DNA of 64,000 nucleotides, taken from Anaeramoeba ignava BMAN. Lineage: Eukaryota > Protista > Anaeramoebae. The stretch is taken from NCBI GenBank assembly GCA_028826165.1, contig JAPDFW010000100.1, positions 124,001 to 188,000 on the forward strand, written 5' to 3'. A model generated the notes under the pieces. That model made no database searches and was not told the DNA's origin. It saw nothing but the letters and a program-made list of their open reading frames with translations. Below are positions 37,420-54,775 of the stretch, piece after piece. A program made the position numbers and the translations under genes. Each line of letters begins with the position of its first letter. The first letter of the stretch is position 1.

Positions 37420-37992
37420 TTACATCAAAAAACATTTTCCTTTTTTCTTTTCTTTTCCTTTTTGTTCTTTTTTTTCTTCTTTTTTCATTAAAAGAATACA
37501 AGATTCATAAAATAATTGTTTAATATTTTCTCCATTTTTAGCAGAAGTTTCAATAAATTTACAATTTAGTTTATTTGCTAATTCTTTTCCTTCTTCAGTT
37601 GAAACTTGTTTTTCTGTAATTAAATCATTTTTATTTCCAACTAAAATTTTTGGATAATTTTCATTTTTAAGGAAATTTTGAATTTTTTCATTCCAAAAAT
37701 TAATCTTTTTAAAACTATCTCTATCAATAACCGAATAAACTAAAATAAATCCTTGACTAAATTTAATCCATGATTCAATTATTGTACTATATTCATCTTC
37801 TCCTTCTGTATCAAGAATATTTATCATAATTTCTTTATCATCAACAATAATCTTTTTTAAAAATTCCCATTCATTTGCTGGATCATAATCATCAACAAAT
37901 CTATCATAAATCAATCTTTTTATTATTGATGTTTTTCCAACACTTCCTTTCCCAAATACTCCAAATTTTAATTTTAATTCTTTCTTTTCCAT
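37420..37992 (-). CDS. Ras-like small GTPase #1 (GKGSVGKT / YDPAN / DTEGE / CFLM)
   Basis: G1, G3, NKND, ETSAK, polybasic CaaX. Confidence 0.92.
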   Translation of the reverse strand: MEKKELKLKFGVFGKGSVGKTSIIKRLIYDRFVDDYDPANEWEFLKKIIVDDKEIMINILDTEGEDEYSTIIESWIKFSQGFILVYSVIDRDSFKKINFWNEKIQNFLKNENYPKILVGNKNDLITEKQVSTEEGKELANKLNCKFIETSAKNGENIKQLFYESCILLMKKEEKKEQKGKEKKKGKCFLM

Positions 37993-38082
37993 TTATTTTT
38001 AAAAATTAAAAAAAAAATGAAAAAATATTTTGATATTTTTTTTTTCAAAATTTAAAAAAAAAGAAAGAAATTATAAAAAGTT

Positions 38083-38664
38083 TCACATCAATAAACATCC
38101 TCCTTTTTTCTTTTCTTTTTCTTTTTCCTTCTCCTTTCTTTTTAAATAATCTTCATTTTCAAGTAAAACAAGAGCAGATTCATAAAATAATTGTTTAATA
38201 TTTTCTCCATTTTTAGCAGAAGTTTCAATATATTTACAATTTAAATGTTTTGCTAATTCTTTTCCTTCTTTTGTTTTCACAACTCTTTTTGTAAATAAAT
38301 CATTTTTATTTCCAATTAAAACTTTTGGATAATTTTTTGATTTAACATTTTGAATAATTTGATCATAAGTTAAAATTTCATTAAAAGTATTTTTATCATC
38401 TATTGAGTAAACCAAAACGAAAGAATCACAATATTTTGCCCAAGATCTTATATTATAAATAGTTTCTTCAGATGAAGCAGTATCTAATATACTTAATATA
38501 ATTTTTTTATCATTAAAATCTTTTTTTTTTCTGTATTCATCTATAAGTATTGGATCATAATCTTCAATAAATCTCTCATCAATAAATCTCATTGTTATTG
38601 TTGATTTCCCAACTCCTTGTTTTCCAATAACTCCAATTTTTAATTCCAATTCTTTATTATCCAT
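38083..38664 (-). CDS. Ras-like small GTPase #2 (GKQGVGKS / YDPIL / DTASS / CLLM)
   Basis: G-box motifs and CaaX in 193-aa ORF. Confidence 0.92.
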   Translation of the reverse strand: MDNKELELKIGVIGKQGVGKSTITMRFIDERFIEDYDPILIDEYRKKKDFNDKKIILSILDTASSEETIYNIRSWAKYCDSFVLVYSIDDKNTFNEILTYDQIIQNVKSKNYPKVLIGNKNDLFTKRVVKTKEGKELAKHLNCKYIETSAKNGENIKQLFYESALVLLENEDYLKRKEKEKEKEKKKGGCLLM

Positions 38665-38761
38665 TTATTTTAAAAATTAAAAAAATGAAAATTAAAAAAT
38701 TGAAAAATGAAAAGTTTTTTCTTAATTTTTGTTCCACTTTTTCTTTAAAAAAAAGCAAAAA

Positions 38762-39361
38762 TCACATCAATAAACAATTTCCTTTTTTCTTTTCTTTTTG
38801 TTTTTTTAATTCTTTCTTCTTTCTTTTTGCTTTTGCTTTTGGAATCGCAAGAATAGAAGATTCATAAAATAATTGATTAATATTTTCTCCATTTTTAGCA
38901 GAAGTTTCAATAAATTTACAATTTAATTGTTTTGCCAATTCTTTTCCTTCTTTTGTTTTAACTTCTCTTTTTGTAAATAAATCATTTTTATTCCCAATTA
39001 AAACTTTTGGATAATCTTCATTTTCCAAAAATTGTTGATTTTTTTTATGAATTTCAATAATTTCTTGGAAACTATTTCTATCATCTATTGAATAAACTAA
39101 AACAAAAGAATAACATTTTCTTGCTATCCTCTCATTTAAAATTTGATATTCTTCTTGTCCTGCTGTATCAAAAATCCATAAATGAATTTTCTCATTATTT
39201 ATATCCATTTTTTTAGAATCTTCATCCATACTTGGATCATAATAATCAATAAATCTTCCTTTTAAAAATCTTTTTGTTATTGATGTTTTTCCAACTCCTT
39301 CTTTTCCAAATATTGCAATTCTTAATTCTAAATAATCATTCCAATTTTTCTTTTTATTCAT
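38762..39361 (-). CDS. Ras-like small GTPase #3 (GKEGVGKT / YDPSM / DTAGQEEY / CLLM)
   Basis: Only copy with canonical DTAGQEEY. Confidence 0.93.
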   Translation of the reverse strand: MNKKKNWNDYLELRIAIFGKEGVGKTSITKRFLKGRFIDYYDPSMDEDSKKMDINNEKIHLWIFDTAGQEEYQILNERIARKCYSFVLVYSIDDRNSFQEIIEIHKKNQQFLENEDYPKVLIGNKNDLFTKREVKTKEGKELAKQLNCKFIETSAKNGENINQLFYESSILAIPKAKAKRKKKELKKQKEKKKGNCLLM

Positions 39362-39410
39362 TTTAAAAATAAATGAAAAAAAATGAAAAATTAAAAATCA
39401 AAAAAAAAAA

Positions 39411-39990
39411 TCACATCAATAAACATTTTCCTTTCTTTTTCTTTTGATTTTCATTTTGATTTTCATTATTTTTTGGAATTCCACAAAGAGTTGCTTCATA
39501 AAATAATTGATTAATATTTTCATTAGTTTTAGCAGAAGTTTCAATATATTTACAATTCAATTTACTTTGCTAATTCTTTTCCTTCTTTTGTTTTCACAAC
39601 TCTTTTTGTAAATAAATCACTTTTATTTCCAATTAAAATTTTTGGATGATTTTCTGATTTATATTTTTTAATAAAATTATCATATCGAAAAATTCTTTGG
39701 AAACTATCTCTATCATTTATTGAATAAACCAAAACAAATATTTCACACATTTCAACCCATGATTTTAAATATCCATCACTTTCTTCAGCTGCTGCTGTAT
39801 CAAGTATTCTTAATAATATTTTTTTATCATTAAAATCAATTTCTTTTCTAAATTCATCTTCAATAGTTGGATCATATTCTTCAATAAATATTTTATGTGT
39901 AAATCTTATTACTGATGTTGATTTTCCAACTCCTTCTTTTCCAAATAATCCTATTTTTAATTCTAAATCATATTCTTTATTTAAATTCAT
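39411..39990 (-). CDS. Ras-like small GTPase #4 (GKEGVGKS / YDPTI / DTAAA); +1 frameshift near 39565
   Basis: ATG at 39990 (MNLNKEYDLEL); the tail after the shift, [24 protein letters not shown]...KCLLM, matches #8. Confidence 0.85.
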
Positions 39991-40085
39991 TTCAAATAAA
40001 AAAATGAAAAGAAAAAATGAAAAATTAATTTTTTCAATTTTTTTATTCCATTTTTTAAAAAAATATAAAAATTGGAATATAAAAA

Positions 40086-40676
40086 TCACATTAATAAACA
40101 TTTTCCTTTCTTCTTCTTTTCATTTTCATTTTGATTTTGATTTTGATTTTCATTTTGATTTGGGATTTTAAAAGAAATAATTTCATAAAATAATTGATTA
40201 ATATTTTCTCCATTTTTAGCAGAAGTTTCAATAAATTTACAATTTAATTTATTTGCTAATTCTTTTCCTTCTTCAATAGAAATTGCTCTTTTCATTGTTA
40301 AATCACTTTTATTTCCAATTAAAACTTTTGGATGATTTTCTGATTTATATTTTTTAATAGAATTATAATAATGAAAAATTTCTTTATAACTATTTCTATC
40401 AGTAATTGAATAAACATAAATAAATAATTCATAACCTCTTGCCAAATTTTCGATATAAGGCCAATATTCTTGACAACCTGCTGTATCAAGTATTCTTAAT
40501 AATATTTTTTTATTATTAAAATCAATTTCTTTTCTAAATTCTTCTTCAATAGTTGGATCATATTCTTCAATAAATTTATCTTCTACAAATCTTATTGCTA
40601 TTGATGATTTCCCAACTGCTCCAGCTCCAAATAATCCTATTTTTAATTCTAAATCATATTCTTTATTTAAATTCAT
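40086..40676 (-). CDS. Ras-like small GTPase #5 (GAGAVGKS / YDPTI / DTAGC / CLLM)
   Basis: True ATG at 40676; G-boxes and CaaX. Confidence 0.92.
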   Translation of the reverse strand: MNLNKEYDLELKIGLFGAGAVGKSSIAIRFVEDKFIEEYDPTIEEEFRKEIDFNNKKILLRILDTAGCQEYWPYIENLARGYELFIYVYSITDRNSYKEIFHYYNSIKKYKSENHPKVLIGNKSDLTMKRAISIEEGKELANKLNCKFIETSAKNGENINQLFYEIISFKIPNQNENQNQNQNENEKKKKGKCLLM

Positions 40677-40773
40677 TTCAAATAAAAAAATGAAAAGAAA
40701 AAAATGAAAAATTAATTTTTTCAATTTTTTATTTCATTTTTTTAAAAAAAATATAAAAATTGAAATATAAAAA

Positions 40774-41359
40774 TCACATTAATAAACATTTTCCTTTCTT
40801 TTTCTTTTCATTTTGATTTTGATTTTGATTTTGATTTTGATTTTCTTTTTGAATTTTCAAAGAAATAATTTCATAAAATAATTGATTAATATTTTCATTA
40901 GTTTTAGCAGAAGTTTCAATAAATTTACAATTCAATTTATTTGCTAATTCTTTTCCTTCTTCAATAGAAACTTTTCTTTTCATTGTTAAATCACTTTTAT
41001 TTCCAATTAAAATTTTTGGATGATTTTCTTTAATTTTTTCAACTCTTTCAAAATAATAACGAAAAATGTCTTTATAACTTGATTTATCAGTAATTGAATA
41101 AACATAAATAAATAATTCATAATCTCTTGCCAAATTTTCAATATTAGGTAAATATTCTTCACAACATGCTGTATCAAGTATATTTAATAATATTTTTTTA
41201 TCATTTAAAATCAATTTCTTTTTTATATTCATCTTCAATAGTTGGATCATATAATTCAATAAATTTATTTTCTACAAATCTTATTGTTATTGTTGATTTT
41301 CCAACTCCTCCAGCTCCAAATAATACAATTTTTGTTTCAATATATTTATTAAAATTCAT
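40774..41359 (-). CDS. Ras-like small GTPase #6 (GAGGVGKS / YDPTI / DTACC); frameshift near 41208
   Basis: [22 protein letters not shown] from 41359 joins ORF 40774-41259 after an A-run shift. Confidence 0.85.
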
Positions 41360-41446
41360 TTCAAATAAAAAATGAAAAGAAAAAAATGAAAATTTTATTT
41401 TTATTCCACTTTTTTAAAAAAGAATATAAAAATTGGAATATAAAAA

Positions 41447-42036
41447 TCACATCAATAAACATTTTCCTTTCTTATTCTTCTTTTCATTTTGATTTTGATT
41501 TTGATTTTCATTTTCTTTTTGAATTTTCAAAGAAATAATTTGGGAAAATGATTGATTAATATTTTCTCCATTTTTAGCAGAAGTTTCAATAAATTTACAA
41601 TTCAATTCCTTTGCTAATTCTTTTCCTTCTTGAGTTTTAACTTTTCTTTTTGTTAATAAATCATTTTTATTTCCAATTAAAATTTTTGGATGATTTTTTT
41701 TAATTTTTTCAATTCTTTCAAAATAATAATGAAAAATTTCTTCATAACTTGATTTATCAGTAATTGAATAAATATAAATAAATAAATCATAATCTTTTGC
41801 CCAATTTTCAATATAAGGCCAATATTCTTCAGCACCAACTGTATCAAGTACTCTTAATAATATTTTTTTATTATTAAAATCAACTATTTTCCGATATTCA
41901 TCTTCAATAAATGGATCAAAATCTTCTTCAATAAATCTATTTTCAAAAAATCTCATTGTTATTGATGATTTTCCAACTCCTCTATTTCCAATTAATGCAA
42001 TTTTTGTTTCAATATATTTTTTAATTTTATTTTCAT
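41447..42036 (-). CDS. Ras-like small GTPase #7 (GNRGVGKS / FDPFI / DTVGA); frameshift just after ATG
   Basis: KYIETKIALIGNRGVGKSSITMRF continues into ORF 41447-41956. Confidence 0.85.
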
Positions 42037-42096
42037 TTAAAAATTAAATTTCAAATTAAAAAGAAAAAGAACTTTTTAAAAAAATAAAATCAAAAA

Positions 42097-42675
42097 TCAC
42101 ATCAATAAACATTTTCCTTTCTTTTTCTTTTGATTTTCATTTTGATTTTCATTATTTTTTGGAATTCCACAAAGAGTTGCTTCATAAAATAATTGATTAA
42201 TATTTTCATTAGTTTTAGCAGAAGTTTCAATATATTTGCAATTCAATTTATTTGCTAATTCTTTTCCTTCTTTTGTTTTAACAACTCTTTTTGTAAATAA
42301 ATCACTTTTATTTCCAATTAAAATTTTTGGATGATTTTCTTTTTTATATTTTTTAATATAATTACAATAATATAAAATTTCTTGAAAACTATCTCTATCA
42401 TTTATTGAATAAACCAAAACAAATATTTCACTCATTTCAACCCATGATTGTACATATGCACTTTCTTCAGCTGCTGCTGTATCAAGTATTCTTAATAATA
42501 TTATTTTATTATTTAAACAAATTTCTTTTCTATATTCATCTTCAATAGTTGGATCATATTCTTCCAAAAAAATATCCTGTATAAATCTTATTGTTATTGT
42601 TGATTTACCAACTCCTTGTTTTCCAAATAATCCAATTTTTAATTCTAAATAATCTTTATTCAAATCCAAATTCAT
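42097..42675 (-). CDS. Ras-like small GTPase #8 (GKQGVGKS / YDPTI / DTAAA / CLLM)
   Basis: 192-aa ORF with G-boxes and CaaX. Confidence 0.92.
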   Translation of the reverse strand: MNLDLNKDYLELKIGLFGKQGVGKSTITIRFIQDIFLEEYDPTIEDEYRKEICLNNKIILLRILDTAAAEESAYVQSWVEMSEIFVLVYSINDRDSFQEILYYCNYIKKYKKENHPKILIGNKSDLFTKRVVKTKEGKELANKLNCKYIETSAKTNENINQLFYEATLCGIPKNNENQNENQKKKKGKCLLM

Positions 42676-42774
42676 TTCAAAGATAAAAAAATGAAAAGAA
42701 AAAAATGAAAAATTAATTTTTGCAATTTTTTTATTCCATTTTTTTAAAATAAAAATAAAATTAGAATATAAAAA

Positions 42775-43371
42775 TCACATCAATAAACATTTTCCTTTCT
42801 TATTCTTATTTTGATTTTTCTTTTGATTTTTCTTTGGATTTTTTAATTCTCCAATTCCAAGAATAGAAGCTTCATAAAATAATTGATTAATATTTTCTAC
42901 ATTTTTAGCAGAAGTTTCAATAAATTTACAATTTAATTTATTTGCTAATTCTTTTCCTTCTTTTGTTTTAACAACTCTTTTTGTAAATAAATCATTTTTA
43001 TTTCCAATTAAAATTTTGCGATAATTTTCATTTCCATCAAGACATTTAGTTGCACTTTTATGAAAATCAATAATTCTTTCAAAACTATCTCTATCAGTAA
43101 TTGAATAAACATAAACAAAAACTTGCGAATATCTTGCCCATCTCCAAGATATTTGATAATATTCTTCACCACGTGCTGTATCAAGTGTATTTAATGATAT
43201 TTTTTTATCATTTAAATCAAATATTTTTCTATATTCTTCTTCAATAGTTGGATCATAATCTCCAATAAAAATATTTTGTATAAATCTTATTGTTATTGTT
43301 GATTTACCAACTCCTCCAGCTCCAAATAATCCAATTCTTAATTGTAATTCATTATCATTATCCAAATTCAT
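42775..43371 (-). CDS. Ras-like small GTPase #9 (GAGGVGKS / YDPTI / DTARG / CLLM)
   Basis: 198-aa ORF with G-boxes and CaaX. Confidence 0.92.
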   Translation of the reverse strand: MNLDNDNELQLRIGLFGAGGVGKSTITIRFIQNIFIGDYDPTIEEEYRKIFDLNDKKISLNTLDTARGEEYYQISWRWARYSQVFVYVYSITDRDSFERIIDFHKSATKCLDGNENYRKILIGNKNDLFTKRVVKTKEGKELANKLNCKFIETSAKNVENINQLFYEASILGIGELKNPKKNQKKNQNKNKKGKCLLM

Positions 43372-43466
43372 TTTAAAGATAAAAAAATGAAAAAGAAAAA
43401 AATGAAATTAATTTTTTGGATTTTTATTCCTCTTTTTAAAAAAAATATAAAATTGGAATATAAAAA

Positions 43467-44043
43467 TCACATTAATGAACATTTCCCTTTCTTATTCTCA
43501 TTTTCATTTTGATTTGGATTTTCTAATTCTTCAATTCCAAGAAGAGCAGATTCATAAAATAATTGTTGAATATTTTCTCCAGTTTTAGCAGAAGTTTCAA
43601 TAAATTTACAATTTAATTTATTTGCTAATTCTTTTCCTTCTTCAATAGAAATTGCTCTTTTCATTGTTAAATCACTTTTATTTCCAATTAAAATTTTTGG
43701 ATGATTTTTTTTAATTTTTTGGATCATTTTCTGGATTTTTTTCATTCTTTTAAAACTATCTCTATCACTAATTGAATAAACATAAACAACAACTTGTGAG
43801 TATCTTGCCCATCTCACATAAACTGAGTAAAATTCTTCAGCTGTTGCTGTATCAAGTATATTTAACATTATTTTTTTATCATTTAATTCAATTTCTTTTT
43901 TATATTCTTCTTCAATAGTTGGATCATATTCTTCAATAAAATGATTAGTTATAAATCTTATTGTTATTGTTGATTTACCAACTCCTTGTTTTCCAAATAA
44001 TCCGATTCTTAATATCCAAATTAAACAAATTATTCAATTCCAT
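43467..44043 (-). CDS. Ras-like small GTPase #10 (GKQGVGKS / YDPTI / DTATA / CSLM); frameshift near 44012
   Basis: [20 protein letters not shown] upstream continues into ORF 43467-43868; ATG at 44043 is out of frame. Confidence 0.83.
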
Positions 44044-44120
44044 TTTAAATTTTTGAAATGAAAAGAAAAAATAATTTTTCAAAAATTTAAAAAATAAAAA
44101 TAAAATTACAAAAAAAAAAA

Positions 44121-44733
44121 TCACATCAATAAACATTTTCCTTTCTTTTTCTTATTTTGATTCTTTTGATTCTCATTTTGATTTTGATTTTGATTATTTT
44201 TTAATTCTTCAATTCCAAGAAGAGAAGATTCATAAAATAATTGATTAAAATTTTCTCCAGTTTTAGCAGAAGTTTCAATAAATTTACAATTTAATTTCTT
44301 TGCTAATTCTTTTCCTTCTTTTGTTTTAACTTCTCTTTTTGTAAATAAATCACTTTTATTTCCAATTAAAATTTTTGGATAATCTTTTTTAATTTCATCA
44401 TTTCCAAAACATTTTTCAAATTTTTCATCAAGTTAATAATTATTTCAAAAAACTATTTCTATCAGTAATTGAATAAATATAAACAAAAACTATGCGAATA
44501 ACTTGAAATCTCCAATCAATAATATAATATTCTTCAGATCCTACAGTATCAAAAATATTTATTAATATTTTTTCATAATTTAAATCAACAATTTTTCTAT
44601 AAGCTTCTTCAATATTTGGTTCATAATCTTCAATAAAAATATTTCTTATAAATCTTCTTGTTATTGCTGTTTTTCCAACTCCTCCATTTCCAAATAATCC
44701 AATTCTTAATTGTAATTTATTTTTATTATTCAA
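44121..44733 (-). pseudogene. Ras-like small GTPase #11 (GNGGVGKT / YEPNI / DTVGS); TTG in place of ATG plus indels near 44430-44450
   Basis: Several lesions, but the 3' half ([12 protein letters not shown]...KCLLM) is intact; could still be sequencing error. Confidence 0.65.
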
Positions 44734-44812
44734 TTTTTTAAAGAAATGAAAAGAAAAATGAAATAAAATTTTTAAGAATTTTTAAAAAAATAAATTTAAT
44801 TCAAAAAAAAAA

Positions 44813-45391
44813 TCACATTAATAAACATTTTCCTTTCTTTTTCTTATTTTGATTCTTTTGATTTTCATTTTCTTTCTTTTTTAATTCTTCAAATGCAAGA
44901 AGAGAAGATTCATAAAATAATTGATTAATATTTTCATTAGTTTTAGCAGAAGTTTCAATAAATTTACAATTTATTTTCTTTGCTAATTCTTTTCCTTCTT
45001 TTGTTTTTACAACTCTTTTCATTGTTAAATCACTTTTATTTCCAATTAAAATTTTTGGATAATCTTCAACATCAAAAACTAATTGAATTTGTTTATGAAA
45101 TTCTAAAATATCTTCCAAAGTTGATTTGTCAAGAACAGAATAAATAAGAGCAAAAGAATGACATTCTCTAATCCAACGATCCATTAAATATGGGAATTCT
45201 TGATAAACAAATTTATGGATTTTTGTTGTAATAACTGCTTCATTTAAAATACAAATTCTGAAAAATTCATCATCAATTGGTGGATCATATTGTTCAGAAA
45301 AAGCTCCATTAATTATTCTTCTAACTATTGATGATTTTCCAACTCCTCCTCTTCCAATTATTCCAATACATACTTCTATTCCATTATCCAT
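44813..45391 (-). CDS. Ras-like protein #12 (GRGGVGKS / YDPPI / KFVYQ - G3 lost / CLLM)
   Basis: 192-aa ORF. Confidence 0.9.
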   Translation of the reverse strand: MDNGIEVCIGIIGRGGVGKSSIVRRIINGAFSEQYDPPIDDEFFRICILNEAVITTKIHKFVYQEFPYLMDRWIRECHSFALIYSVLDKSTLEDILEFHKQIQLVFDVEDYPKILIGNKSDLTMKRVVKTKEGKELAKKINCKFIETSAKTNENINQLFYESSLLAFEELKKKENENQKNQNKKKKGKCLLM

Positions 45392-45520
45392 TATTTTTCT
45401 TTTATTTATTTTGAATGAAAAAAATGAAAAAAATGAAAATGAAAATGAAAAAATTTTCTTTTTGATTCATTCAATAAATAATTTAAAAGATGAAAAAAAT
45501 CTCAAATGAAAGTTTTTTTT

Positions 45521-46120
45521 TCACATTAATAAACATTTTCCTTTTTTCTTTTTCATTTGATTTTGATTTTGATTTTGATTTTGATTTTGATTTTGATTTT
45601 GGATTTTTAAATTGAAAGATTCATAAAATAATTGATTAATATTTTCTCCAGTTTTAGCAGAAGTTTCAATAAATTTACAATTTATTTTCTTTGCTAATTC
45701 TTTTCCTTCTTTTGTTTTAATAACTCTTTTCATTGTTAAATCATTTTTATTTCCAATTAAAATTTTTGGATAATCTTCAACATTAAGAATATTTTTAATT
45801 CTTTTATAATGATAATTTAAAATTTGATTAAAACTATATTTATCAGTAATTGAATAAACTAAAAAGAAAATATTTGATTGTTTGCATAATTCTGGGAAAT
45901 AATCACCATATTCTTCTCGAGGTGTTGAATTAAAAATCAAAAAAGTTATTTTTTCATTATTGAAATTAAATATTTTGGAAAATTGTTCATCAATTAATGG
46001 AGAATATTCTTCATTAAATTTATTTTCGGTAAATTTTAATATTATTGATGATCTTCCAACTCCTCCACTTCCAAATAATCCAATTTTTACTTCATAATCA
46101 AATGATTTATTATTTTTCAT
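45521..46120 (-). CDS. Ras-like protein #13 (GSGGVGRS / YSPLI / NSTPR - G3 lost / CLLM)
   Basis: 199-aa ORF. Confidence 0.9.
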   Translation of the reverse strand: MKNNKSFDYEVKIGLFGSGGVGRSSIILKFTENKFNEEYSPLIDEQFSKIFNFNNEKITFLIFNSTPREEYGDYFPELCKQSNIFFLVYSITDKYSFNQILNYHYKRIKNILNVEDYPKILIGNKNDLTMKRVIKTKEGKELAKKINCKFIETSAKTGENINQLFYESFNLKIQNQNQNQNQNQNQNQMKKKKGKCLLM

Positions 46121-46214
46121 TTTTTTTTATTAAATCAAAAATGAAAAAAATGAAAACTTTTTTTTTTGATAATTATAAATTAAATCAAATAAATTGTTTT
46201 AAAATAAATTATTT

Positions 46215-46821
46215 TCACATTAATAAACATTTTCCTTTTTTCTTTTTCATTTGATTTTGATTTTGATTTTGATTTTGATTTTTGATTTTCTTTATTTTTT
46301 AATTCTTCAAATGCAAGAAGAGAAGATTCATAAAATAATTGATTAATATTTTCTCCAGTTTTAGCAGAAGTTTCAATATATTTACAATTTAAATTTCTTG
46401 CTAATTCTTTTCCTTGTTTAATTGAAATTTCTCTTTTCATTGTTAAATCACTTTTATTTCCAATTAAAATTTTTGGATAATCTTTTCTAATTTTTTTGAT
46501 TGAATAATTATGATAATTTAAAATTTCATCAAAACTATATTTATCAATAATTGAATAAATCAAAACAAAAACTTGTGAATATTCAACCCATCTTGGAAAT
46601 GGATCATAAATTTCTTGTGGATATGTTGTATCAAGTACTTTTAATAATATTTTTTTATCATTTAATTCAATTTCTTTTGTATATTCATCTTCAACATTTG
46701 GATCATATTCTTCAATAAACATATTATGTGTAAATTTTATTGTTATTGATGATTTCCCAACTCCTCCAGCTCCAAATATACCAATTCTTAAATCATAATC
46801 AAATGATTTATTATTTTCCAT
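46215..46821 (-). CDS. Ras-like small GTPase #14 (GAGGVGKS / YDPNV / DTTYP); frameshift in NQ tail
   Basis: [12 protein letters not shown] is present at 46215-46245 in a shifted frame. Confidence 0.87.
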
Positions 46822-46991
46822 TTTTTTTTATTAATTTAAAAATGAAAAAAATGAAAACTTTTTTTTTTAAAATTTTTTTTTTGATAATTAAAAATCAAAA
46901 CAAATAAATTGATTAAAACAAATTGAGAATAAGAAGATTGTCTGTTTAAAATATCATTTTACTTTTTCAAAAGTTTTTAAAAAACTTATTA

Positions 46992-47573
46992 TCACATTAA
47001 TAAACATTTTCCTTTTTTCTTTTTGTTTTGATTTTCTTTATTTTTTAATTCTTGAATTGCAAGAAGAGAAGCTTCATAAAATAATTGATTAAGATTTTCA
47101 CCAGTTTTAGCAGAAGTTTCAATATATTTACAATTTAATTGTTTTGCTAATTCTTTTCCTTTTTTTGTTTTAACTTCTCTTTTTGTAAATAAATCACTTT
47201 TATTTCCAATTAAAATTTTTGGATAATCTTGAACATTAAGAATATTTTTAATTCTTTTATAATGATAATTTAAAATTTCACCAAAACTATATTTATCAAT
47301 AATTGAATAAACTAAAACAAAAACTTGTGAAAATTCAACCCATCTTGGAAATGGATCACAAAATTCTTCTGGATATGCTGTATCAAGTACTTTTAATAAT
47401 ATTTTTTTATCATTTAATTCAATTTCTTTTATATATTCATCTTCAATAGTTGGATCATATTCTTCAATAAAAATATTATGTGTAAATTTTATTGTTATTG
47501 TTGATTTCCCAACTCCTCCAGCTCCAAATATACCAATTCTTAATTCATAATCAAATGATTTATTATTTTCCAT
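46992..47573 (-). CDS. Ras-like small GTPase #15 (GAGGVGKS / YDPTI / DTAYP / CLLM)
   Basis: 193-aa ORF. Confidence 0.92.
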   Translation of the reverse strand: MENNKSFDYELRIGIFGAGGVGKSTITIKFTHNIFIEEYDPTIEDEYIKEIELNDKKILLKVLDTAYPEEFCDPFPRWVEFSQVFVLVYSIIDKYSFGEILNYHYKRIKNILNVQDYPKILIGNKSDLFTKREVKTKKGKELAKQLNCKYIETSAKTGENLNQLFYEASLLAIQELKNKENQNKKKKGKCLLM

Positions 47574-47741
47574 TTTTTTTTATTAATTTAAAAATGAAAA
47601 AAATGAAAACTTTTTTTTAAAATTTTTTTTTTGATAATTATAAATTAAATCAAATAAATTGTTTAAAACAAATTGAGGATAAGAAGATTATCTGTTTAAA
47701 ATATCATTTTACTTTTTCAAAAGTTTTTAAAAAACTTATTA

Positions 47742-48323
47742 TCACATTAATAAACATTTTCCTTTTTTCTTTTTGTTTTGATTTTTAAATTTATTTGGAT
47801 TTTTCTTCATTTCTTCAAATGCAAGAATAGAAGCTTCATAAAATAATTGATGAATATTTTCTCCAGTTTTAGCAGAAGTTTCAATATATTTACAATTTAA
47901 TTGTTTTGCTAATTCTTTTCCTTGTTTAGTTTTAACTTCTCTTTTTGTAAATAAATCACTTTTATTTCCAATTAAAATTTTTGGATAATCTTGAACATTA
48001 AGGAAATGAAGAATTTTTTCATGAATTTCAAGAATTTCTTGAAAACTAGATTTATCAATAATTGAATAAATCAAAACAAAAACTTGTGAATATTCAACCC
48101 ATCTTTGAAATGGATCATAAATATCACGAGGATATGCAGTATCAAGTATACTTGTGTATAATTTTTGATCATTTAATTCATTTAATCTTCTATATTCATC
48201 TTCAATACATGGATCTTGATATTCAATAAAATGATTAGTTATATATTTAACTGCTATTATTGATTTCCCAACATCTACCTTTCCAAACAATCCTATATTG
48301 AAATATAATCCTTCGTCATTCAT
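47742..48323 (-). CDS. Ras-like small GTPase #16 (GKVDVGKS / QDPCI / DTAYP / CLLM)
   Basis: Likely ATG at 48323 (MNDEGLYFNIGLFG). Confidence 0.9.
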   Translation of the reverse strand: MNDEGLYFNIGLFGKVDVGKSIIAVKYITNHFIEYQDPCIEDEYRRLNELNDQKLYTSILDTAYPRDIYDPFQRWVEYSQVFVLIYSIIDKSSFQEILEIHEKILHFLNVQDYPKILIGNKSDLFTKREVKTKQGKELAKQLNCKYIETSAKTGENIHQLFYEASILAFEEMKKNPNKFKNQNKKKKGKCLLM

Positions 48324-48421
48324 TTTTGATTTCAAAAAAAGAAAAATGAAAAAAAATGAAAAAAATTTTTCTTTGATTTTTATTCTCAAAAATTTCAATC
48401 AAAATCCAAAAAAAAAAAAAA

Positions 48422-49027
48422 TTACATCAATAAACATTTTCCTTTTTTCTTATGATATTTATTTTGGTATTTATTTGGATTCTTTTCCAAATCTTGAATT
48501 GCAAGAATTATTGATTCATAAAATAATTGATGAACATTTTCTCCAGTTTTAGCAGAAGTTTCAATAAATTTACAATTTAATTTCTTTGCTAATTCTTTTC
48601 CTTGTTTACATGTGATTCGTCTTTTTGTAAATAAATCACTTTTATTTCCAATTAAAATTTTTGGATAATCTTTTTTATTTTCATTTTTTTCAAGAAGATA
48701 TCTTTTAATTAATTCATGAAAATAATTGATTTCTTTGAAACTAAATTTATTATCAACGGAATAAACCAAAACAAAAAAATCACTAAATTTCAAGCATCTT
48801 TTAATAATAATAGAATCCTCTTCACATCCTGCTGAATCAAGTATTTCGAATATTATTTTTTCATCATTTAATTCAATTTCTTTTCTGTAAGATTCTTCAA
48901 TAGTTGGATCGTATTCTTGAATAAATTTTCCTAATAAAAACCTAATTAAAATTGTTGATTTTCCAACTCCTCCACTTCCATAAAGAACAATTCTTAAGTG
49001 AGGATTGTTCTGTTTTTTATTATTCAT
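48422..49027 (-). CDS. Ras-like small GTPase #17 (GSGGVGKS / YDPTIEESY / DSAGC / CLLM)
   Basis: 201-aa ORF. Confidence 0.92.
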   Translation of the reverse strand: MNNKKQNNPHLRIVLYGSGGVGKSTILIRFLLGKFIQEYDPTIEESYRKEIELNDEKIIFEILDSAGCEEDSIIIKRCLKFSDFFVLVYSVDNKFSFKEINYFHELIKRYLLEKNENKKDYPKILIGNKSDLFTKRRITCKQGKELAKKLNCKFIETSAKTGENVHQLFYESIILAIQDLEKNPNKYQNKYHKKKGKCLLM

Positions 49028-49087
49028 TTTTAAAAAAACAAATAAGAAGAAAAATGAAAAATCAATTCAAAAAAAAAAAATCAAAAA

Positions 49088-49687
49088 TCACATCAAAAAA
49101 CATTTCCCTTTCTTATTTTTCTTTTTCTTTTTCTTTTGATTTAGATTTTCTTCTTCTATTGTTTTCAATCTTTCAATTTCAAGAAGAATTGTTTCATAAA
49201 ATAATTGATTAATATTTTCTCCAGTTTTAGCAGAAGTTTCAATAAATTTACAATTTAATTTCTTTGCTAATTCTTTTCCTTCTTTAATTGAAACTTCTCT
49301 TTTCATTGTTAAATCACTTTTATTTCCAATTAAAATTTTTGGATAATCTTTATCTTCAATATCAAGAATTCTTTTAATTCTTTCATCAAAATATTTAATT
49401 TCTTCAAAACTTTCTTTATAAGTAATAGAATAAATCAAAACAAAAATATTTGTTTCACGAACATAATTTGGAAATGGATCATAATGTTCTTCTTGGAGTG
49501 CTGTATCAAGAATAATGAATTTTATTTTCTTATCATTTAAATCATTTTTTTTTATATAAATATCAGTAATAGTTGGATCATAATCTTCAACAAAAATATC
49601 CTTTAAAAATCTTATTGTTATTGTTGATTTTCCAATTCCTCCACTTCCAAATATTCCTATTTTTATTTCTATTTCTTTATTTTCCAT
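49088..49687 (-). CDS. Ras-like small GTPase #18 (GSGGIGKS / YDPTI / DTALQ / CFLM)
   Basis: 199-aa ORF. Confidence 0.92.
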   Translation of the reverse strand: MENKEIEIKIGIFGSGGIGKSTITIRFLKDIFVEDYDPTITDIYIKKNDLNDKKIKFIILDTALQEEHYDPFPNYVRETNIFVLIYSITYKESFEEIKYFDERIKRILDIEDKDYPKILIGNKSDLTMKREVSIKEGKELAKKLNCKFIETSAKTGENINQLFYETILLEIERLKTIEEENLNQKKKKKKNKKGKCFLM

Positions 49688-49745
49688 TTTTGTTATTTAA
49701 AAAAATAAATAAGAAGAAAAATGAAAAAAATGAAAAAATCAAAAA

Positions 49746-50345
49746 TCACATCAAAAAACATTTTCCTTTCTTATTTTTCTTTTTCTTTTTCTTTTGATTT
49801 AGATTTTCTTCTTCTATTGTTTTCAATCTTTCAATTTCAAGAAGAATTGTTTCATAAAATAATTGATTAATATTTTCTCCAGTTTTAGCAGAAGTTTCAA
49901 TAAATTTACAATTTAATTTCTTTGCTAATTCTTTTCCTTGTTTAATTGAAACTTCTCTTTTCATTGTTAAATCACTTTTATTTCCAATTAAAATTTTTGG
50001 ATAATCTTTATCTTCAATATCAAGAATTCTTTTAATTCTTTCATTAAAATATTTAATATCTTCAAAACTTCTTTTATAAGTAATAGAATAAATCAAAACA
50101 AAAATATCTGTGTATTGCACATATCTTGGAAATGGATCATAATGTTCTTCTTGGGGTGCTGTATCAAGAATATAGAATAATATTTTCTTATTATTTAAAT
50201 CATTTTCTTTTTTATATTCATCTTCAATAGTTGGATCATAATCTTCAACAAAAATATCCTTTGAAAATCTTATTGCTATTGTTGATTTTCCAACTCCTCC
50301 ACTTCCAAATAATCCAACTTTTATTTTCATTTCTTTATTTTCCAT
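49746..50345 (-). CDS. Ras-like small GTPase #19 (GSGGVGKS / YDPTI / DTAPQ / CFLM)
   Basis: 199-aa ORF; 3' half essentially identical to #18. Confidence 0.92.
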   Translation of the reverse strand: MENKEMKIKVGLFGSGGVGKSTIAIRFSKDIFVEDYDPTIEDEYKKENDLNNKKILFYILDTAPQEEHYDPFPRYVQYTDIFVLIYSITYKRSFEDIKYFNERIKRILDIEDKDYPKILIGNKSDLTMKREVSIKQGKELAKKLNCKFIETSAKTGENINQLFYETILLEIERLKTIEEENLNQKKKKKKNKKGKCFLM

Positions 50346-50444
50346 TTTTATTATTTAAAAACAAAAAAATGAAAAAAAATGAAAAAAATGAAAAAAATGA
50401 AAAAAATGAAAAAAAATGAAAAAAATGAAAATTTTTTTTTTGAA

Positions 50445-51090
50445 TTAATAATAATTTGGAAATAAAATTAAATCAATTATTTAAAAAATGAGAAAATAAA
50501 GATTATTTGTTTAAAATTTAATTTTACTTTTTAAATTAATAATAATTTGGAAATAAAATTAAATCAATTATTTAAAAAATGAGAAAAATAAAGATTATTT
50601 GTTTAAAATTTAATTTTACTTTTTCTTGAATTAATAATAATTTGGAAATAAAATTAAATCAATTATTTAAAAAATGAGAAAATAAAGATTATTTGTTTAA
50701 AATTTGATTTTACTTTTTTTAAATTAATAATAATTTGGAAATAAAATTAAATCAATTATTTAAAAAATGAAAAATAAAGATTATTTGTTTAAAATTTAAT
50801 TTTACTTTTCTTGAATTAATAATAATTTGGAAATAAATCAAATCAATTATTTAAAAAATGAGAAAATAAAGATTATTTGTTTAAAATTTAATTTTACTTT
50901 TCTTAAATTAATAATAATTTAGAAATAAATTAAATCAATTATTTAAAAAATGAGAAAATAAAGATTATTTGTTTAAAATTTGATTTTACTTTTTTTAAAT
51001 TAATAATAATTTGGAAATAAATCAAATCAATTATTTAAAAAATGAAAAAATAAAGATTATTTGTTTAAAATTTGATTTTACTTTTTTTAA
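50445..51090. repeat. ~92-bp intergenic minisatellite, 7 copies
   Basis: TTAATAATAATTTGGAAATAAAATTAAATCAATTATTTAAAAAATGAGAAAATAAAGATTATTTGTTTAAAATT... at 50445, 50536, 50631, 50724, 50816, 50908 and 51000. Confidence 0.92.
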
Positions 51091-51102
51091 AAAAATCAAA
51101 AT

Positions 51103-51701
51103 TCACATTAATAAACATTTTCCTTTTTTCTTTTTCTTTTTCTTTTGATTTAGATTTTCTTCTTTTATTGTTTTCAATCTTTCAATTTCAAGAAGAATTG
51201 TTTCATAAAATATTTGATTAATATTTTCTCCATTTTTAGCAGAAGTTTCAATATATTTACAATTTAATTCTTTTGCTAATTTTTTTCCTTCTTTAATTGA
51301 AATTTCTCTTTTCATTGTTAAATCACTATTATTTCCAATTAAAACTTTTGGATAATCTTTATCTTCAATATTAAGAATTCTTTTAATTCTTTCATCAAAA
51401 TATTTAATATCTTCAAAGCTATGCTTATCAGTAATTGAATAAACTAAAACAAAAATATCTCTTCTTCTAATAGAACGTGAGAGTGTATCACCAAATTCTT
51501 CTTGATGAGATATATCAAAAATATTTAATTTTATTTTCTTATCATTTAAATTAATTTTATTTCTTTTTCATATTCTTCTTCAATAGTTGGATCATATTCT
51601 TCAATAAAAATATCTTGAATATATTTGATTACTATTCTTGATTTATAAGATCCATAACCTCCAACTATTCCAATTTTTATTTCCATTTCTTTATTTTCCA
51701 T
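51103..51701 (-). CDS. Ras-like pseudo-GTPase #20 (GGYGSYKS / YDPTI / DISHQ / NNSD / CLLM); frameshift near 51560
   Basis: Manual translation from ATG at 51701 (MENKEMEIKIGIVGGYGSYKSRIVIKY) joins ORF 51103-51315. Confidence 0.8.
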
Positions 51702-51760
51702 TTTTATTATTTAAAAACAAATATTTAAAAAAAATGAAAAAAATGAAAAAATGAAAAAAA

Positions 51761-52330
51761 TCACATTAATAAACATTTTCCTTTTTTCTTTTTCTTTTGA
51801 TTTTGATTTTTTAATTCAATTTCAAGAAGAATTGTTTCATAAAATATTTGATTAATATTTTCTCCAGTTTTAGCAGAAGTTTCAATAAATTTACAATTTA
51901 ATTCTTTTGCTAATTCTTTTCCTTTTTCAATTGAAATTTCTCTTTTCATTGTTAAATCACTTTTATTTCCAATTAAAACTTTTGGATAATCTTTATCTTC
52001 AATATCAAGAATGTATTTAATTTCTTTATCAAAATTTTTAATAACTTCAAAGCTATGCTTATCAGTAATAGAATAAATCAAAACAAAAATATTTGTTTGA
52101 CGAACATAATTTGGAAATGGATCATAACTGCTGTCTTGAGATGCTGTATCAAGAATATTGAATTTTATTTTCTTATTATTTAAATCATTTTTTTTTATAT
52201 AAATATCATCAATAGTTGGATCATAATCTTCAATAAAAATATTCTTTAAAAATCTAGTTGTTATTGTTGATTTACCAACTCCTCCAACTCCAAATAATCC
52301 AATTTTTATTTCTATTTCTTTATTTTCCAT
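51761..52330 (-). CDS. Ras-like small GTPase #21 (GVGGVGKS / YDPTI / DTASQ / CLLM)
   Basis: 189-aa ORF. Confidence 0.92.
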   Translation of the reverse strand: MENKEIEIKIGLFGVGGVGKSTITTRFLKNIFIEDYDPTIDDIYIKKNDLNNKKIKFNILDTASQDSSYDPFPNYVRQTNIFVLIYSITDKHSFEVIKNFDKEIKYILDIEDKDYPKVLIGNKSDLTMKREISIEKGKELAKELNCKFIETSAKTGENINQIFYETILLEIELKNQNQKKKKKGKCLLM

Positions 52331-52407
52331 TTTTATTATTTAAAAACAAAAAAATGAAAAAAATGAAAAAAATGAAAAAAAATGAAAAAAATGAAAATTT
52401 TTTTGAA

Positions 52408-53420
52408 TTAATAATAATTTGGAAATAAAATCAAATCAATTATTTAAAAAATGAAAAAATAAAGATTATTTGTTTAAAATTTTATTTTACTTTTCTTAAA
52501 TTAATAATAATTTGGAAATAAATCAAATCAATTATTTAAAAAATGAAAAAATAAAGATTATTTGTTTAAAATTTTATTTTACTTTTCTTGAATTAATAAT
52601 AATTTGGAAATAAATTAAATCAATTATTTAAAAAATGAAAAAAAGATTATTTGTTTAAAATTTAATTTTAATTTTTTTGAATTAATAATAATTTAGAAAT
52701 AAATTAAATCAATTATTTAAAAAATGAGAAAATAAAGATTATTTGTTTAAAATTTTATTTTAATTTTTTTGAATTAATAATAATTTGGAAATAAAATCAA
52801 ATCAATTATTTAAAAAATGAGAAAATAAAGATTATTTGTTTAAAATTTTATTTTACTTTTCTTGAATTAATAATAATTTGGAAATAAAATTAAATCAATT
52901 ATTTAAAAAATGAGAAAATAAAGATTATTTGTTTAAAATTTTATTTTACTTTTCTTGAATTAATAATAATTTAGAAATAAATTAAATCAATTATTTAAAA
53001 AATGAGAAAATAAAGATTATTTGTTTAAAATTTTATTTTAATTTTTTTGAATTAATAATAATTTGGAAATAAAATCAAATCAATTATTTAAAAAATGAGA
53101 AAATAAAAATTATTTGTTTAAAATTTAATTTTAATTTTTTTGAATTAATAATAATTTGGAAATAAAATCAAATCAATTATTTAAAAAATGAGAAAATAAG
53201 GATTATTTGTTTAAAATTTAATTTTAATTTTTTTGAATTAATAATAATTTAGAAATAAATTAAATCAATTATTTAAAAAATGAAAAATAAAGATTATTTG
53301 TTTAAAATTTTATTTTACTTTTCTTGAATTAATAATAATTTGGAAATAAAATAAATCAATTATTTAAAAAATGAAAAATAAAGATTATTTGTTTAAAATT
53401 TTATTTTACTTTTTTTAAAA
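52408..53420. repeat. ~92-bp intergenic minisatellite, 11 copies (same unit as 50445-51090)
   Basis: Unit starts at about 52408, 52501, 52593 ... 53329. Confidence 0.92.
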
Positions 53421-53430
53421 AAATCAAAAT

Positions 53431-54027
53431 TCACATTAATAAACATTTTCCTTTTTTCTTTTTCTTTTGATTTTGATTATTTTGATTTTCTTTTTGATTT
53501 TCTATTGTTTTCAATCTTTCAATTTCAAGAAGAATTGTTTCATAAAATATTTGATTAATATTTTCTCCAGTTTTAGCAGAAGTTTCAATAAATTTACAAT
53601 TTAATTCTTTTGCTAATTTTTTTCCTTTTTCAATTGAAACTTCTCTTTTTGTAAATAAATCACTTTTATTTCCAATTAAAACTTTTGGATAATTTTCACA
53701 ATCAAAAAATCTCTGAATTTTGTCATGAAAAAATTGAACTTCTTTCAAACTAAGTTTTCTAGTAATTGAATAAACTAAAACAAAAATATTTGATTCTTTG
53801 ATCCAATTTTCAATAATTAGAGAATATTCTTCATTTCCTGCAGTATCAATAATTGAAAAATTAATTTGTTCATCATTTAAAGTTATTCTTTTTCGAAAAA
53901 AATCTTCAATAGTTGGATCATATTCTGGAAGAAATCTTTCATCAATAAATTTTGTTACTATTGATGATTTTCCAACTCCTCCAGCTCCAAAAATACACAC
54001 TTTCACTTTTAATTCTTTATCATCCAT
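53431..54027 (-). CDS. Ras-like small GTPase #22 (GAGGVGKS / YDPTI / DTAGN / CLLM)
   Basis: 198-aa ORF. Confidence 0.92.
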   Translation of the reverse strand: MDDKELKVKVCIFGAGGVGKSSIVTKFIDERFLPEYDPTIEDFFRKRITLNDEQINFSIIDTAGNEEYSLIIENWIKESNIFVLVYSITRKLSLKEVQFFHDKIQRFFDCENYPKVLIGNKSDLFTKREVSIEKGKKLAKELNCKFIETSAKTGENINQIFYETILLEIERLKTIENQKENQNNQNQKKKKKGKCLLM

Positions 54028-54121
54028 TTTGATATTTTGATATTTTTTAAAAAGGAGAATAAAAAAATGAAAATGATTTTTTTTTTGAAAAATTTTTTAT
54101 TTTAGAAATTTGAAAAGAATT

Positions 54122-54775
54122 TCACATTAATAAACATTTTCCTTTCTTCTTTTGATTTTGATTATTTTGATTTTGATTTTGATTTTGATTATTTTGATTT
54201 TGATTATTTTGATTTTGATTATTTTGATTTTGATTATTTTGATTTTGATTTTGATTCTTTTTTAATTCTTCAAATTCAAGAAGTAAAGATTCATAAAATA
54301 TTTGATTAATATTTTCTCCAGTTTTAGCAGAAGTTTCAATATATTTACAATTTAATTCTCTTGCTAATTCTTTTCCTTCTTTACATGTGATTTGCCTTTT
54401 TGTAAATAAATCACTTTTATTTCCAATTAAAATTTTTGGATACTTTTTTTCTTCTTTTGAATAATCAGTAATTTTTTGATAAATAATTTTGATTTGATTA
54501 AAACTCAATCTATCAGTAATAGAATAAACCAAAATAATTCTATCACAATATTCAATAGAGTTATTAAATATAAATTCAGAATCATCACTTGTTGTATCAA
54601 GAATATAAATATAAATTGATTCATCATCTAAATCAAATTTTCTTCTAAATCTATTTCCCATTCCCATTTCTATTTCTTCAACAAATTCATTCATTAAAAA
54701 TCTCATTATCATTGATGATTTTCCAACACCTTTGAATCCAAACAAACCAATTCTTATTTCTAAATCATTATCCAT
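54122..54775 (-). CDS. Ras-like protein #23 (GFKGVGKS / effector loop replaced by IEMGMG / DTTSD / long NQ linker / CLLM)
   Basis: 217-aa ORF. Confidence 0.9.
   Translation of the reverse strand: MDNDLEIRIGLFGFKGVGKSSMIMRFLMNEFVEEIEMGMGNRFRRKFDLDDESIYIYILDTTSDDSEFIFNNSIEYCDRIILVYSITDRLSFNQIKIIYQKITDYSKEEKKYPKILIGNKSDLFTKRQITCKEGKELARELNCKYIETSAKTGENINQIFYESLLLEFEELKKNQNQNQNNQNQNNQNQNNQNQNNQNQNQNQNNQNQKKKGKCLLM

Follow-up and report, generated by a model that had tools for sequence, protein, structure and literature searches.

A tandem array of predicted K-Ras4B-like genes in Anaeramoeba ignava, with relaxed constraint on switch II and a homogenised C-terminal lobe

Introduction

Among the atypical small GTPases, Rnd proteins are class ii pseudoGTPases that stay permanently GTP-bound without hydrolysis, and RGK proteins are class iii, hydrolysing GTP despite divergent G motifs (PMC5593906). 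The present study concerns 23 Ras-family genes of Anaeramoeba ignava BMAN, intronless and arranged head-to-tail on the minus strand at positions 37420-54775 of a 64,000-nt stretch of DNA (hereafter the window; assembly GCA_028826165.1, contig JAPDFW010000100.1, forward-strand positions 124,001 to 188,000). Similar to Rnd and the other atypical GTPases, which also include RhoH and kappaB-Ras, the array has degraded catalytic and switch II residues and retains the nucleotide-binding motifs. These, however, are conserved orthologue families with one fixed non-canonical sequence each, whereas the array consists of 23 paralogues, each with a different replacement in a segment that evolves at the neutral rate. 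Similarity also extends to tandem families that evolve in concert or by birth and death, with mosaic gene conversion, in that adjacent copies are closest relatives, trees of different parts are discordant, and one block is synonymously homogenised. Unlike in such families, the homogenised tract is sharply bounded inside the coding sequence (codons 107-159) and the intergenic DNA is not homogenised, having an ungapped identity of about 0.45-0.50 in comparisons that omit the upstream region of copy 5 and the downstream region of copy 6. The array can be described as atypical Ras-family GTPases in a tandem arrangement that evolves in concert.

By sequence and structure prediction, the array is a lineage-specific tandem set of Ras-subfamily, K-Ras4B-like genes. 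The products are about 190-217 residues long and run from the G domain through a linker rich in glutamine and asparagine (QN) or in lysine to a polybasic stretch and a CAAX box. Five copies match the Pfam Ras family (PF00071) with E values from 1e-33 to 1e-45, and the best sequence match in the PDB is K-Ras4B, collinear through the tail (E 6.5e-41, copy 19). The AlphaFold2 model of copy 15 has a mean predicted local distance difference test score (pLDDT) of 89.3, and a predicted template modelling (TM) score of 0.86. Its strands and helices are in canonical order, and its top Foldseek matches are K-Ras4B (5tar_A, TM 0.83), RRas2 and Rap1B, with TM values of 0.78-0.83. With K-Ras4B the products share the fold, the P-loop, D57/T58, NKxD, SAK, and the polybasic stretch with a CAAX box ending in M; unlike classical Ras, the array lacks a conserved G12, T35, G60, Q61 and alpha-2 helix.

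Loss of the Catalytic Residues

Ras numbering was taken from a MAFFT alignment anchored on the canonical Ras of the same genome (L003, with DTAGQEEYSAMRD), which is good to about residue 120, and a eukaryote-wide set of 179 Ras-family proteins sharing below 50% identity with the array served as background. An earlier note made from the letters of this DNA had listed the residues equivalent to Ras 57-61 in the 23 copies and had remarked that none keeps the full catalytic set. All 23 pentads were reproduced in the same order, and the counts agree: G60 is kept in seven copies (1, 3, 5, 7, 11, 17, 22) and Q61 in six (3, 12, 18, 19, 20, 21), copy 3 is alone in having both and carries G12E and T35S, and G12, T35, G60 and Q61 occur together in 0 of 23. 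Copy 22 comes nearest to the full set, departing only by Q61N. In switch I, T35 (G2) is kept in 13 of the 23, nine other residues standing in its place elsewhere. The background has T35 and G12 in 179 of 179 proteins, G60 in 178, and Q61 in 149 plus 29 with a Rap-type threonine; the lone background protein without G60 is probably the array family's own unlinked member. Judged on these aligned residues, the switch II pattern of the array is far from chance relative to the 179 homologues.

The other G motifs have fared better. GxxxxGK[ST] is found in the P-loop of 21 copies, the exceptions being copy 13 (K16R) and copy 20, in which the motif is degenerate; D57 is likewise kept in 21, having been lost in two intact copies; NKxD (G4) is present in 22 and SAK (G5) in all 23. 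A CAAX box, reading CLLM, CFLM or CSLM, terminates 22 of the products, and copy 14 has lost its own by a frameshift in the tail. At positions 60 and 61, on the other hand, 10 different residues each are found, requiring 12 Fitch parsimony steps each from an inferred root of G and Q, which indicates that the catalytic residues were lost many times independently in open genes. Mean column entropy tells the same story along the protein: codons 59-77 have 2.29 bits in the array versus 0.87 in the background, and codons 109-159 have 0.47 versus 1.49 bits. The conservation profile is therefore inverted: the 179 homologues conserve the effector lobe, whereas the array varies in this lobe and is constant in the C-terminal one. 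Variation of this kind is shared by surface positions 25, 52, 54, 88 and 95 in the N-terminal two-thirds, which vary as much as 60 and 61. Within switch II, subclade-specific motifs are seen, namely DPFPRWV in copies 14-21 and WPYIEN in copies 5-7.

Substitution Rates and Reading Frames

Rates were estimated with our own simplified MG94-type codon likelihood code, using position-specific nucleotide frequencies and nucleotide maximum likelihood (ML) trees. The ratio of nonsynonymous to synonymous rates (omega) is 0.58 for codons 5-58, 0.52 for 59-77, 0.50 for 78-108 and 0.37 for 109-159, significantly below 1 in every region (2dlnL, twice the log-likelihood difference, of 9-16 for the separate regions), and similar values were obtained with the 16 intact copies alone. 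When the nonsynonymous rate is expressed relative to the mean synonymous rate of codons 5-108, codons 59-77 reach 0.96 (0.86-1.11) and codons 60-61 1.12 (confidence interval 0.74-1.65). By the same measure codons 5-108 outside 59-77 stand at 0.49, switch I at 0.40 and the P-loop at 0.31. Change in switch II is thus about twice as rapid as in the remaining N-terminal two-thirds, and proceeds at about the neutral rate. The earlier note had proposed targeted diversification of this segment, and the proposal is not borne out: codons 59-64, which had been set in advance as its test, stand at 0.67 on the same scale and hence not above neutral; in a per-site grid test no site among 55-78 has a nonsynonymous rate (beta) above the synonymous rate (alpha); and dN/dS in the variable segment does not exceed 1, as it would under diversifying selection. 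Since it evolves at about the neutral rate, switch II is under relaxed constraint rather than diversifying selection. Nei-Gojobori (NG86) pN/pS ratios, which come out near 1 in all regions, were rejected as an artefact of AT bias, because at twofold third positions a change from A to T is nonsynonymous, and few codons end in G or C.

It may still be asked whether diversifying selection drove the effector lobe and switch II apart, giving a repertoire of Ras variants that differ in their partners, such as new signalling specificities, or decoys and escape variants against bacterial effectors modifying the switch regions. A variable N-lobe on a constant C-lobe resembles the architecture of a repertoire, the reading frames are maintained, the subclade motifs of switch II are conserved, and at position 12 beta lies above alpha (uncorrected p 0.046). 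Moreover, Anaeramoebae host bacteria, and the Legionellales symbiont reported from A. pumila has Dot/Icm effectors as well as Rac genes of host origin (bioRxiv 10.64898/2026.04.11.717937), which counts on the same side. We nevertheless regard this explanation as unlikely, as omega is at or below 1 everywhere, and the value for codons 59-77 is 0.96 when set against the synonymous rate of codons 5-108 and only 0.52 on their own scale. The per-site hits all lie outside switch II (12, 18, 20, 29 and 85, p 0.01-0.05), and some five sites at p <0.05 among 155 tests are about what chance would give. In the recent duplicate pairs 14/15, 18/19, 4/8, 5/6 and 9/10, switch II is no faster than its flanks.

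The earlier note also held that the array is not in random decay, which is right, although on grounds other than those it gave. Over the trees about 214 stop gains would be expected in codons 5-159 under neutrality, and the 23 copies contain not one, even though divergence in the 5' part amounts to roughly 3 synonymous events per codon. The P-loop, moreover, stands at 0.31 of the synonymous rate. Residues G10, G15, K16, S17, F28, D57, Y82 and S83 persist in the 5' part, and at some of these conserved sites, for example 15 and 83, synonymous variation has accumulated.

Gene Conversion of the C-Terminal Lobe

The retention of G4 and G5, which the earlier note had taken as an argument for targeted diversification over random decay, stands as an observation and is weak evidence for selection, for the synonymous sites of the same region are frozen too. 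Where two copies have identical residues, their codons differ in 5.5% of cases in codons 109-159 versus 19-31% upstream, and the near-identical block of DNA, covering G4, alpha-4 and G5, is sharply delimited by codons 107 and 159. In length, the ML tree from codons 109-159 falls short of the one from codons 5-108 by a factor of about 5.5, and the two are in conflict: in the 5' tree the partner of copy 10 is copy 9, in the 3' tree it joins copies 5 and 6, while copy 23, a long isolated branch in the 5' tree, is sister to copy 17 in the 3' tree. Each partition rejects the tree of the other (approximately unbiased test, p = 4e-12 and 2.5e-77), and all four combinations of the haplotypes FT/TM (residues 121-122) and KT/SI (127-128) occur. 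Taken together, the frozen synonymous sites, the tree conflict and the four haplotype combinations indicate that codons 107-159 have been homogenised among copies by gene conversion or unequal recombination. The uniformity of G4 and G5 hence cannot be read as selection alone, and gene conversion explains much of it.

Proposed Account and Its Alternatives

We lean toward an account in which the array has been freed from the switch constraint, nucleotide binding, open reading frame (ORF) and tail have remained under purifying selection, the C-lobe has been gene-converted, and the copies have turned over by birth and death. G12, T35, G60 and Q61, together with the whole of switch II and alpha-2, would have been released from constraint and replaced repeatedly at about the synonymous rate. 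Purifying selection would have retained K16/S17, D57/T58, NKxD and SAK, which are the residues expected to hold nucleotide and Mg, as well as the hydrophobic core, the reading frame and the prenylation tail. Homogenisation of codons 107-159 would then place a variable N-lobe on a constant C-lobe, and birth and death would account for the seven copies with recent lesions. Of all this, the gene anatomy, the rates, the recombination and the upkeep of the reading frames are established by the present analysis. The products are predicted to be membrane-anchored, nucleotide-binding and poorly hydrolysing, and to be no longer dependent on the switch operated by GTPase-activating proteins (GAPs) and guanine nucleotide exchange factors (GEFs). 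Because the nucleotide motifs and the CAAX box are kept, nucleotide-binding, hydrolysis-poor proteins fit the sequence. By their motifs the copies combine degraded catalysis with kept nucleotide binding, as class ii pseudoGTPases do, and hydrolysis-poor, non-switching products resembling that class are plausible.

If so, the array can be viewed as a natural mutational scan of Ras, in which G12, T35, G60, Q61 and alpha-2 have been replaced in 23 paralogues while the fold, the anchor and predicted nucleotide binding are kept. It would indicate which parts of Ras become dispensable once GAP/GEF switching is not needed, and it supplies natural candidates for atypical, possibly GTP-locked Ras in a little-studied, metamonad-related lineage. 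Two methodological cautions follow as well, one being that the conservation of G4 and G5 looked like selection and was largely gene conversion, and the other that at 20% GC content naive dN/dS lands near 1 and is misleading. In a bolder version, the array might be a repertoire generator, recombination keeping a membrane-facing C-lobe and anchor constant in some 16 or more GTP-locked "on" Ras variants that differ in partner specificity, or in decoys for symbiont or pathogen effectors aimed at the switch regions, with control by transcription instead of GEFs and GAPs; we consider this quite unlikely, and it would imply that episodic selection at the bases of the DPFPRWV and WPYIEN subclades had escaped the site-averaged tests.

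Several points weigh against the account that we favour. The rate model has fixed trees, proportional branch lengths and near-saturated sequences, so that its confidence intervals are too narrow, and any recombination within the 5' part would distort the estimates. The two subclade motifs could themselves represent new constraints, or episodic selection of the kind that site-averaged tests let through. With regard to the products, Rap, which has T61, hydrolyses GTP with a non-canonical G3 residue. The RGK proteins also hydrolyse GTP with non-canonical G3 residues (PMC5593906). As for expression, none of the five sequencing runs containing the stretch is recorded as RNA, and of the 10 intact copies looked up none occurs in the EukProt transcriptome set, all being found in genome-derived sources only. 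That set does include canonical Ras paralogues of A. ignava, and the absence is weak negative evidence on expression. Finally, the lesions of the damaged copies, as read in the assembly, may be either recent or assembly errors.

The cases of Rap and RGK lead to the possibility that GTPase cycling persists non-canonically, either by catalysis supplied in trans by a GAP, as in Rap, or despite divergent motifs, as in RGK, so that the variation in switch II would alter regulation and leave hydrolysis in place. Copies 17, 22 and 5, which lack only Q61 and so are comparable to Rap with its T61, would suit such a scheme, as would copies 18, 19 and 21, which keep Q61, G12 and T35. Under this scheme, however, the residues of the mechanism should be conserved, yet positions 60 and 61 show 10 residues each at a neutral rate. 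Nine copies have oncogenic-type changes at G12 or G13 (V, D, E, Q, R, K), and the two losses of D57 fall in intact genes. We think it improbable that the proteins cycle in this way.

The missing expression evidence and the lesions raise another alternative, that the array is mostly dead DNA, in which a single functional gene has given rise to duplicates that are silent or in decay, and that the variability of switch II is the drift of pseudogenes. Seven of the 23 copies have a frameshift or a lost start codon, and an omega of about 0.5 is high for a Ras gene. Such decay is nevertheless hard to reconcile with the complete lack of stop gains in a region where synonymous changes abound, or with a P-loop, F28, D57, Y82 and S83 that stay conserved as synonymous variation builds up at positions such as 15 and 83, and we consider it very unlikely. 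A further argument on this side comes from the upstream DNA. The element TTCATTTTT lies within 58 nt upstream of the ATG in 20 of the 22 copies examined (for example at 50346-50403), with 39 occurrences against about 0.03 expected per 58 nt, and given this enrichment each copy seems to have a start element of its own. Elements of this sequence resemble the TCA-containing initiator of parabasalids.

Relatives and Distribution

A profile search of 5.8 billion proteins found the array family in A. ignava only. Scores above 250 bits give way abruptly to scores of about 190 bits, a value typical of generic Ras and Rap, which means that there are no close orthologues elsewhere among the proteins searched. 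The A. flamelloides protein P0019 (DTAGC) was considered as a close orthologue and set aside, as it is only a weakly supported sister (63%). Within the genome the family consists of this array plus one unlinked member (L001, C106:43816-44385), which has DSAPQ in switch II and the tail KKKKKNCILM and is placed inside the array clade with 100% support; it is probably a dispersed array copy. The same genome has four dispersed, near-identical canonical Ras genes of 196 aa with DTAGQEEYSAMRD (L003-L006, on C100, C81, C134 and C55), and one other Ras-family paralogue with DTAGQ.

A second tandem Ras-like array, about 35% identical to the first, is located at C60:774500-794500. Like the main array it lacks DxxG and Q61 and keeps NKxD and SAK, indicating that the loss of G60 and Q61 is recurrent in the Ras expansions of A. 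ignava. It has D-Y-Y-Y(D/C) in place of DTAGQ as well as SN-repeat linkers, and differs in a switch II that departs from Ras and yet is fairly uniform among its own copies, and in its CLIF or CFIF tails. The Anaeramoeba genome paper treats Rab expansions, and its term-matched passages contain no discussion of the array (PMC11550330).

Individual Copies

Coordinates, frames and pentads of the copies, all on the minus strand, were obtained from the ORF listing, six-frame reading and the MAFFT alignment. Among the intact copies, those at the left end are copy 1 (37420..37992, 190 aa), with G1 reading GKGSVGKT, A35, DTEGE and a CFLM tail; copy 2 (38083..38664, 193 aa), with G12Q, I35 and DTASS; and copy 3 (38762..39361, 199 aa), already mentioned for its G12E, T35S and DTAGQ. 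Copy 5 (40086..40676, 196 aa) has G13A and DTAGC, copy 8 (42097..42675, 192 aa) G12Q and DTAAA, and copy 9 (42775..43371, 198 aa) a canonical P-loop and T35 followed by DTARG. The two intact genes without D57 are neighbours: copy 12 (44813..45391, 192 aa) reads KFVYQ with P35 and has lost T58 too, and copy 13 (45521..46120, 199 aa) reads NSTPR with L35 and K16R. DTAYP is shared by copy 15 (46992..47573, 193 aa), where it is followed by the DPFPRWV motif, and copy 16 (47742..48323, 193 aa), which combines G12V with G13D and has C35. Further to the right are copy 17 (48422..49027, 201 aa), with DSAGC and a canonical P-loop and T35; copy 18 (49088..49687, 199 aa), with DTALQ; copy 19 (49746..50345, 199 aa), with DTAPQ; and copy 21 (51761..52330, 189 aa), with DTASQ. 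Copy 22 (53431..54027, 198 aa), the nearest to canonical, keeps G12, T35 and G60 and reads DTAGN. Copy 23 (54122..54775, 217 aa) ends the array with G12K, a switch I replaced by IEMGMGN, DTTSD and a long NQ linker.

The copies damaged as assembled are 4, 6, 7, 10, 11, 14 and 20. Copy 4 (39411..39990; G12E, DTAAA) is frameshifted by one extra base at 39564, outside a homopolymer; copy 6 (40774..41359; canonical P-loop, DTACC) by an extra A at 41206; and copy 10 (43467..44043; G12Q, DTATA) by an extra A at 44013, past the ATG and ahead of the P-loop. In copy 7 (41447..42036; G12R, F35, DTVGA) an A-run is one base short, which takes the ATG out of the frame of the P-loop, and in copy 11 (44121..44733; N35, DTVGS) the ATG has become TTG and two 1-base deletions follow (~44447 and ~44430). 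Copy 14 (46215..46821; N35, DTTYP) is frameshifted at the start of its QN linker, putting the CAAX box out of frame, so that the ORF as read ends at 46180. Copy 20 (51103..51701; DISHQ) has a 5-nt insertion at 51547-51551, a degenerate P-loop (GGYGSYKS) and NNSD in place of NKxD. Introns were rejected as the cause of these breaks, which are indels of 1-5 nt in a coding sequence that is collinear apart from them. If the lesion is disregarded, all seven read through to a CAAX box, which suggests that the lesions are recent or are assembly errors. According to the genome paper, the assembly was made from Nanopore R9 reads and polished with Illumina data, Pilon being among the references (PMC11550330). 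Several lesions are located outside homopolymers, in the divergent and uniquely mappable 5' part, and most of them are for this reason taken as real, as far as the assembled letters allow.

Layout and Annotation of the Array

The window has a GC content of about 20% and belongs to a contig of 237,904 bp. On the left, the array is flanked by an alpha-actinin-like gene (35658-37241, plus strand) and on the right by a TRAPPC10-like gene (54947-57752, minus strand). A microsatellite of QN, NQ or KS, differing greatly in length among the genes, links G domain and tail in copy 23 (54122-54300) and in the other copies. Spacers between the genes are mostly 49-170 bp. Two long ones, 50346-51102 and 52331-53430, consist of a tandem repeat of about 100 bp in roughly 7 and 11 units with a GC content of about 9.5%; the repeat sets in directly past the stop codon in copies 20 and 22, and copies 15 and 16 are followed by a related sequence. 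The GenBank annotation describes the genes only as "ras gtpase". One NCBI gene model, P0007 (167 aa), bridges the 5-nt insertion of copy 20 by an "intron" that removes switch I, and another, P0121 (369 aa), corresponds to two adjacent array copies fused into one.

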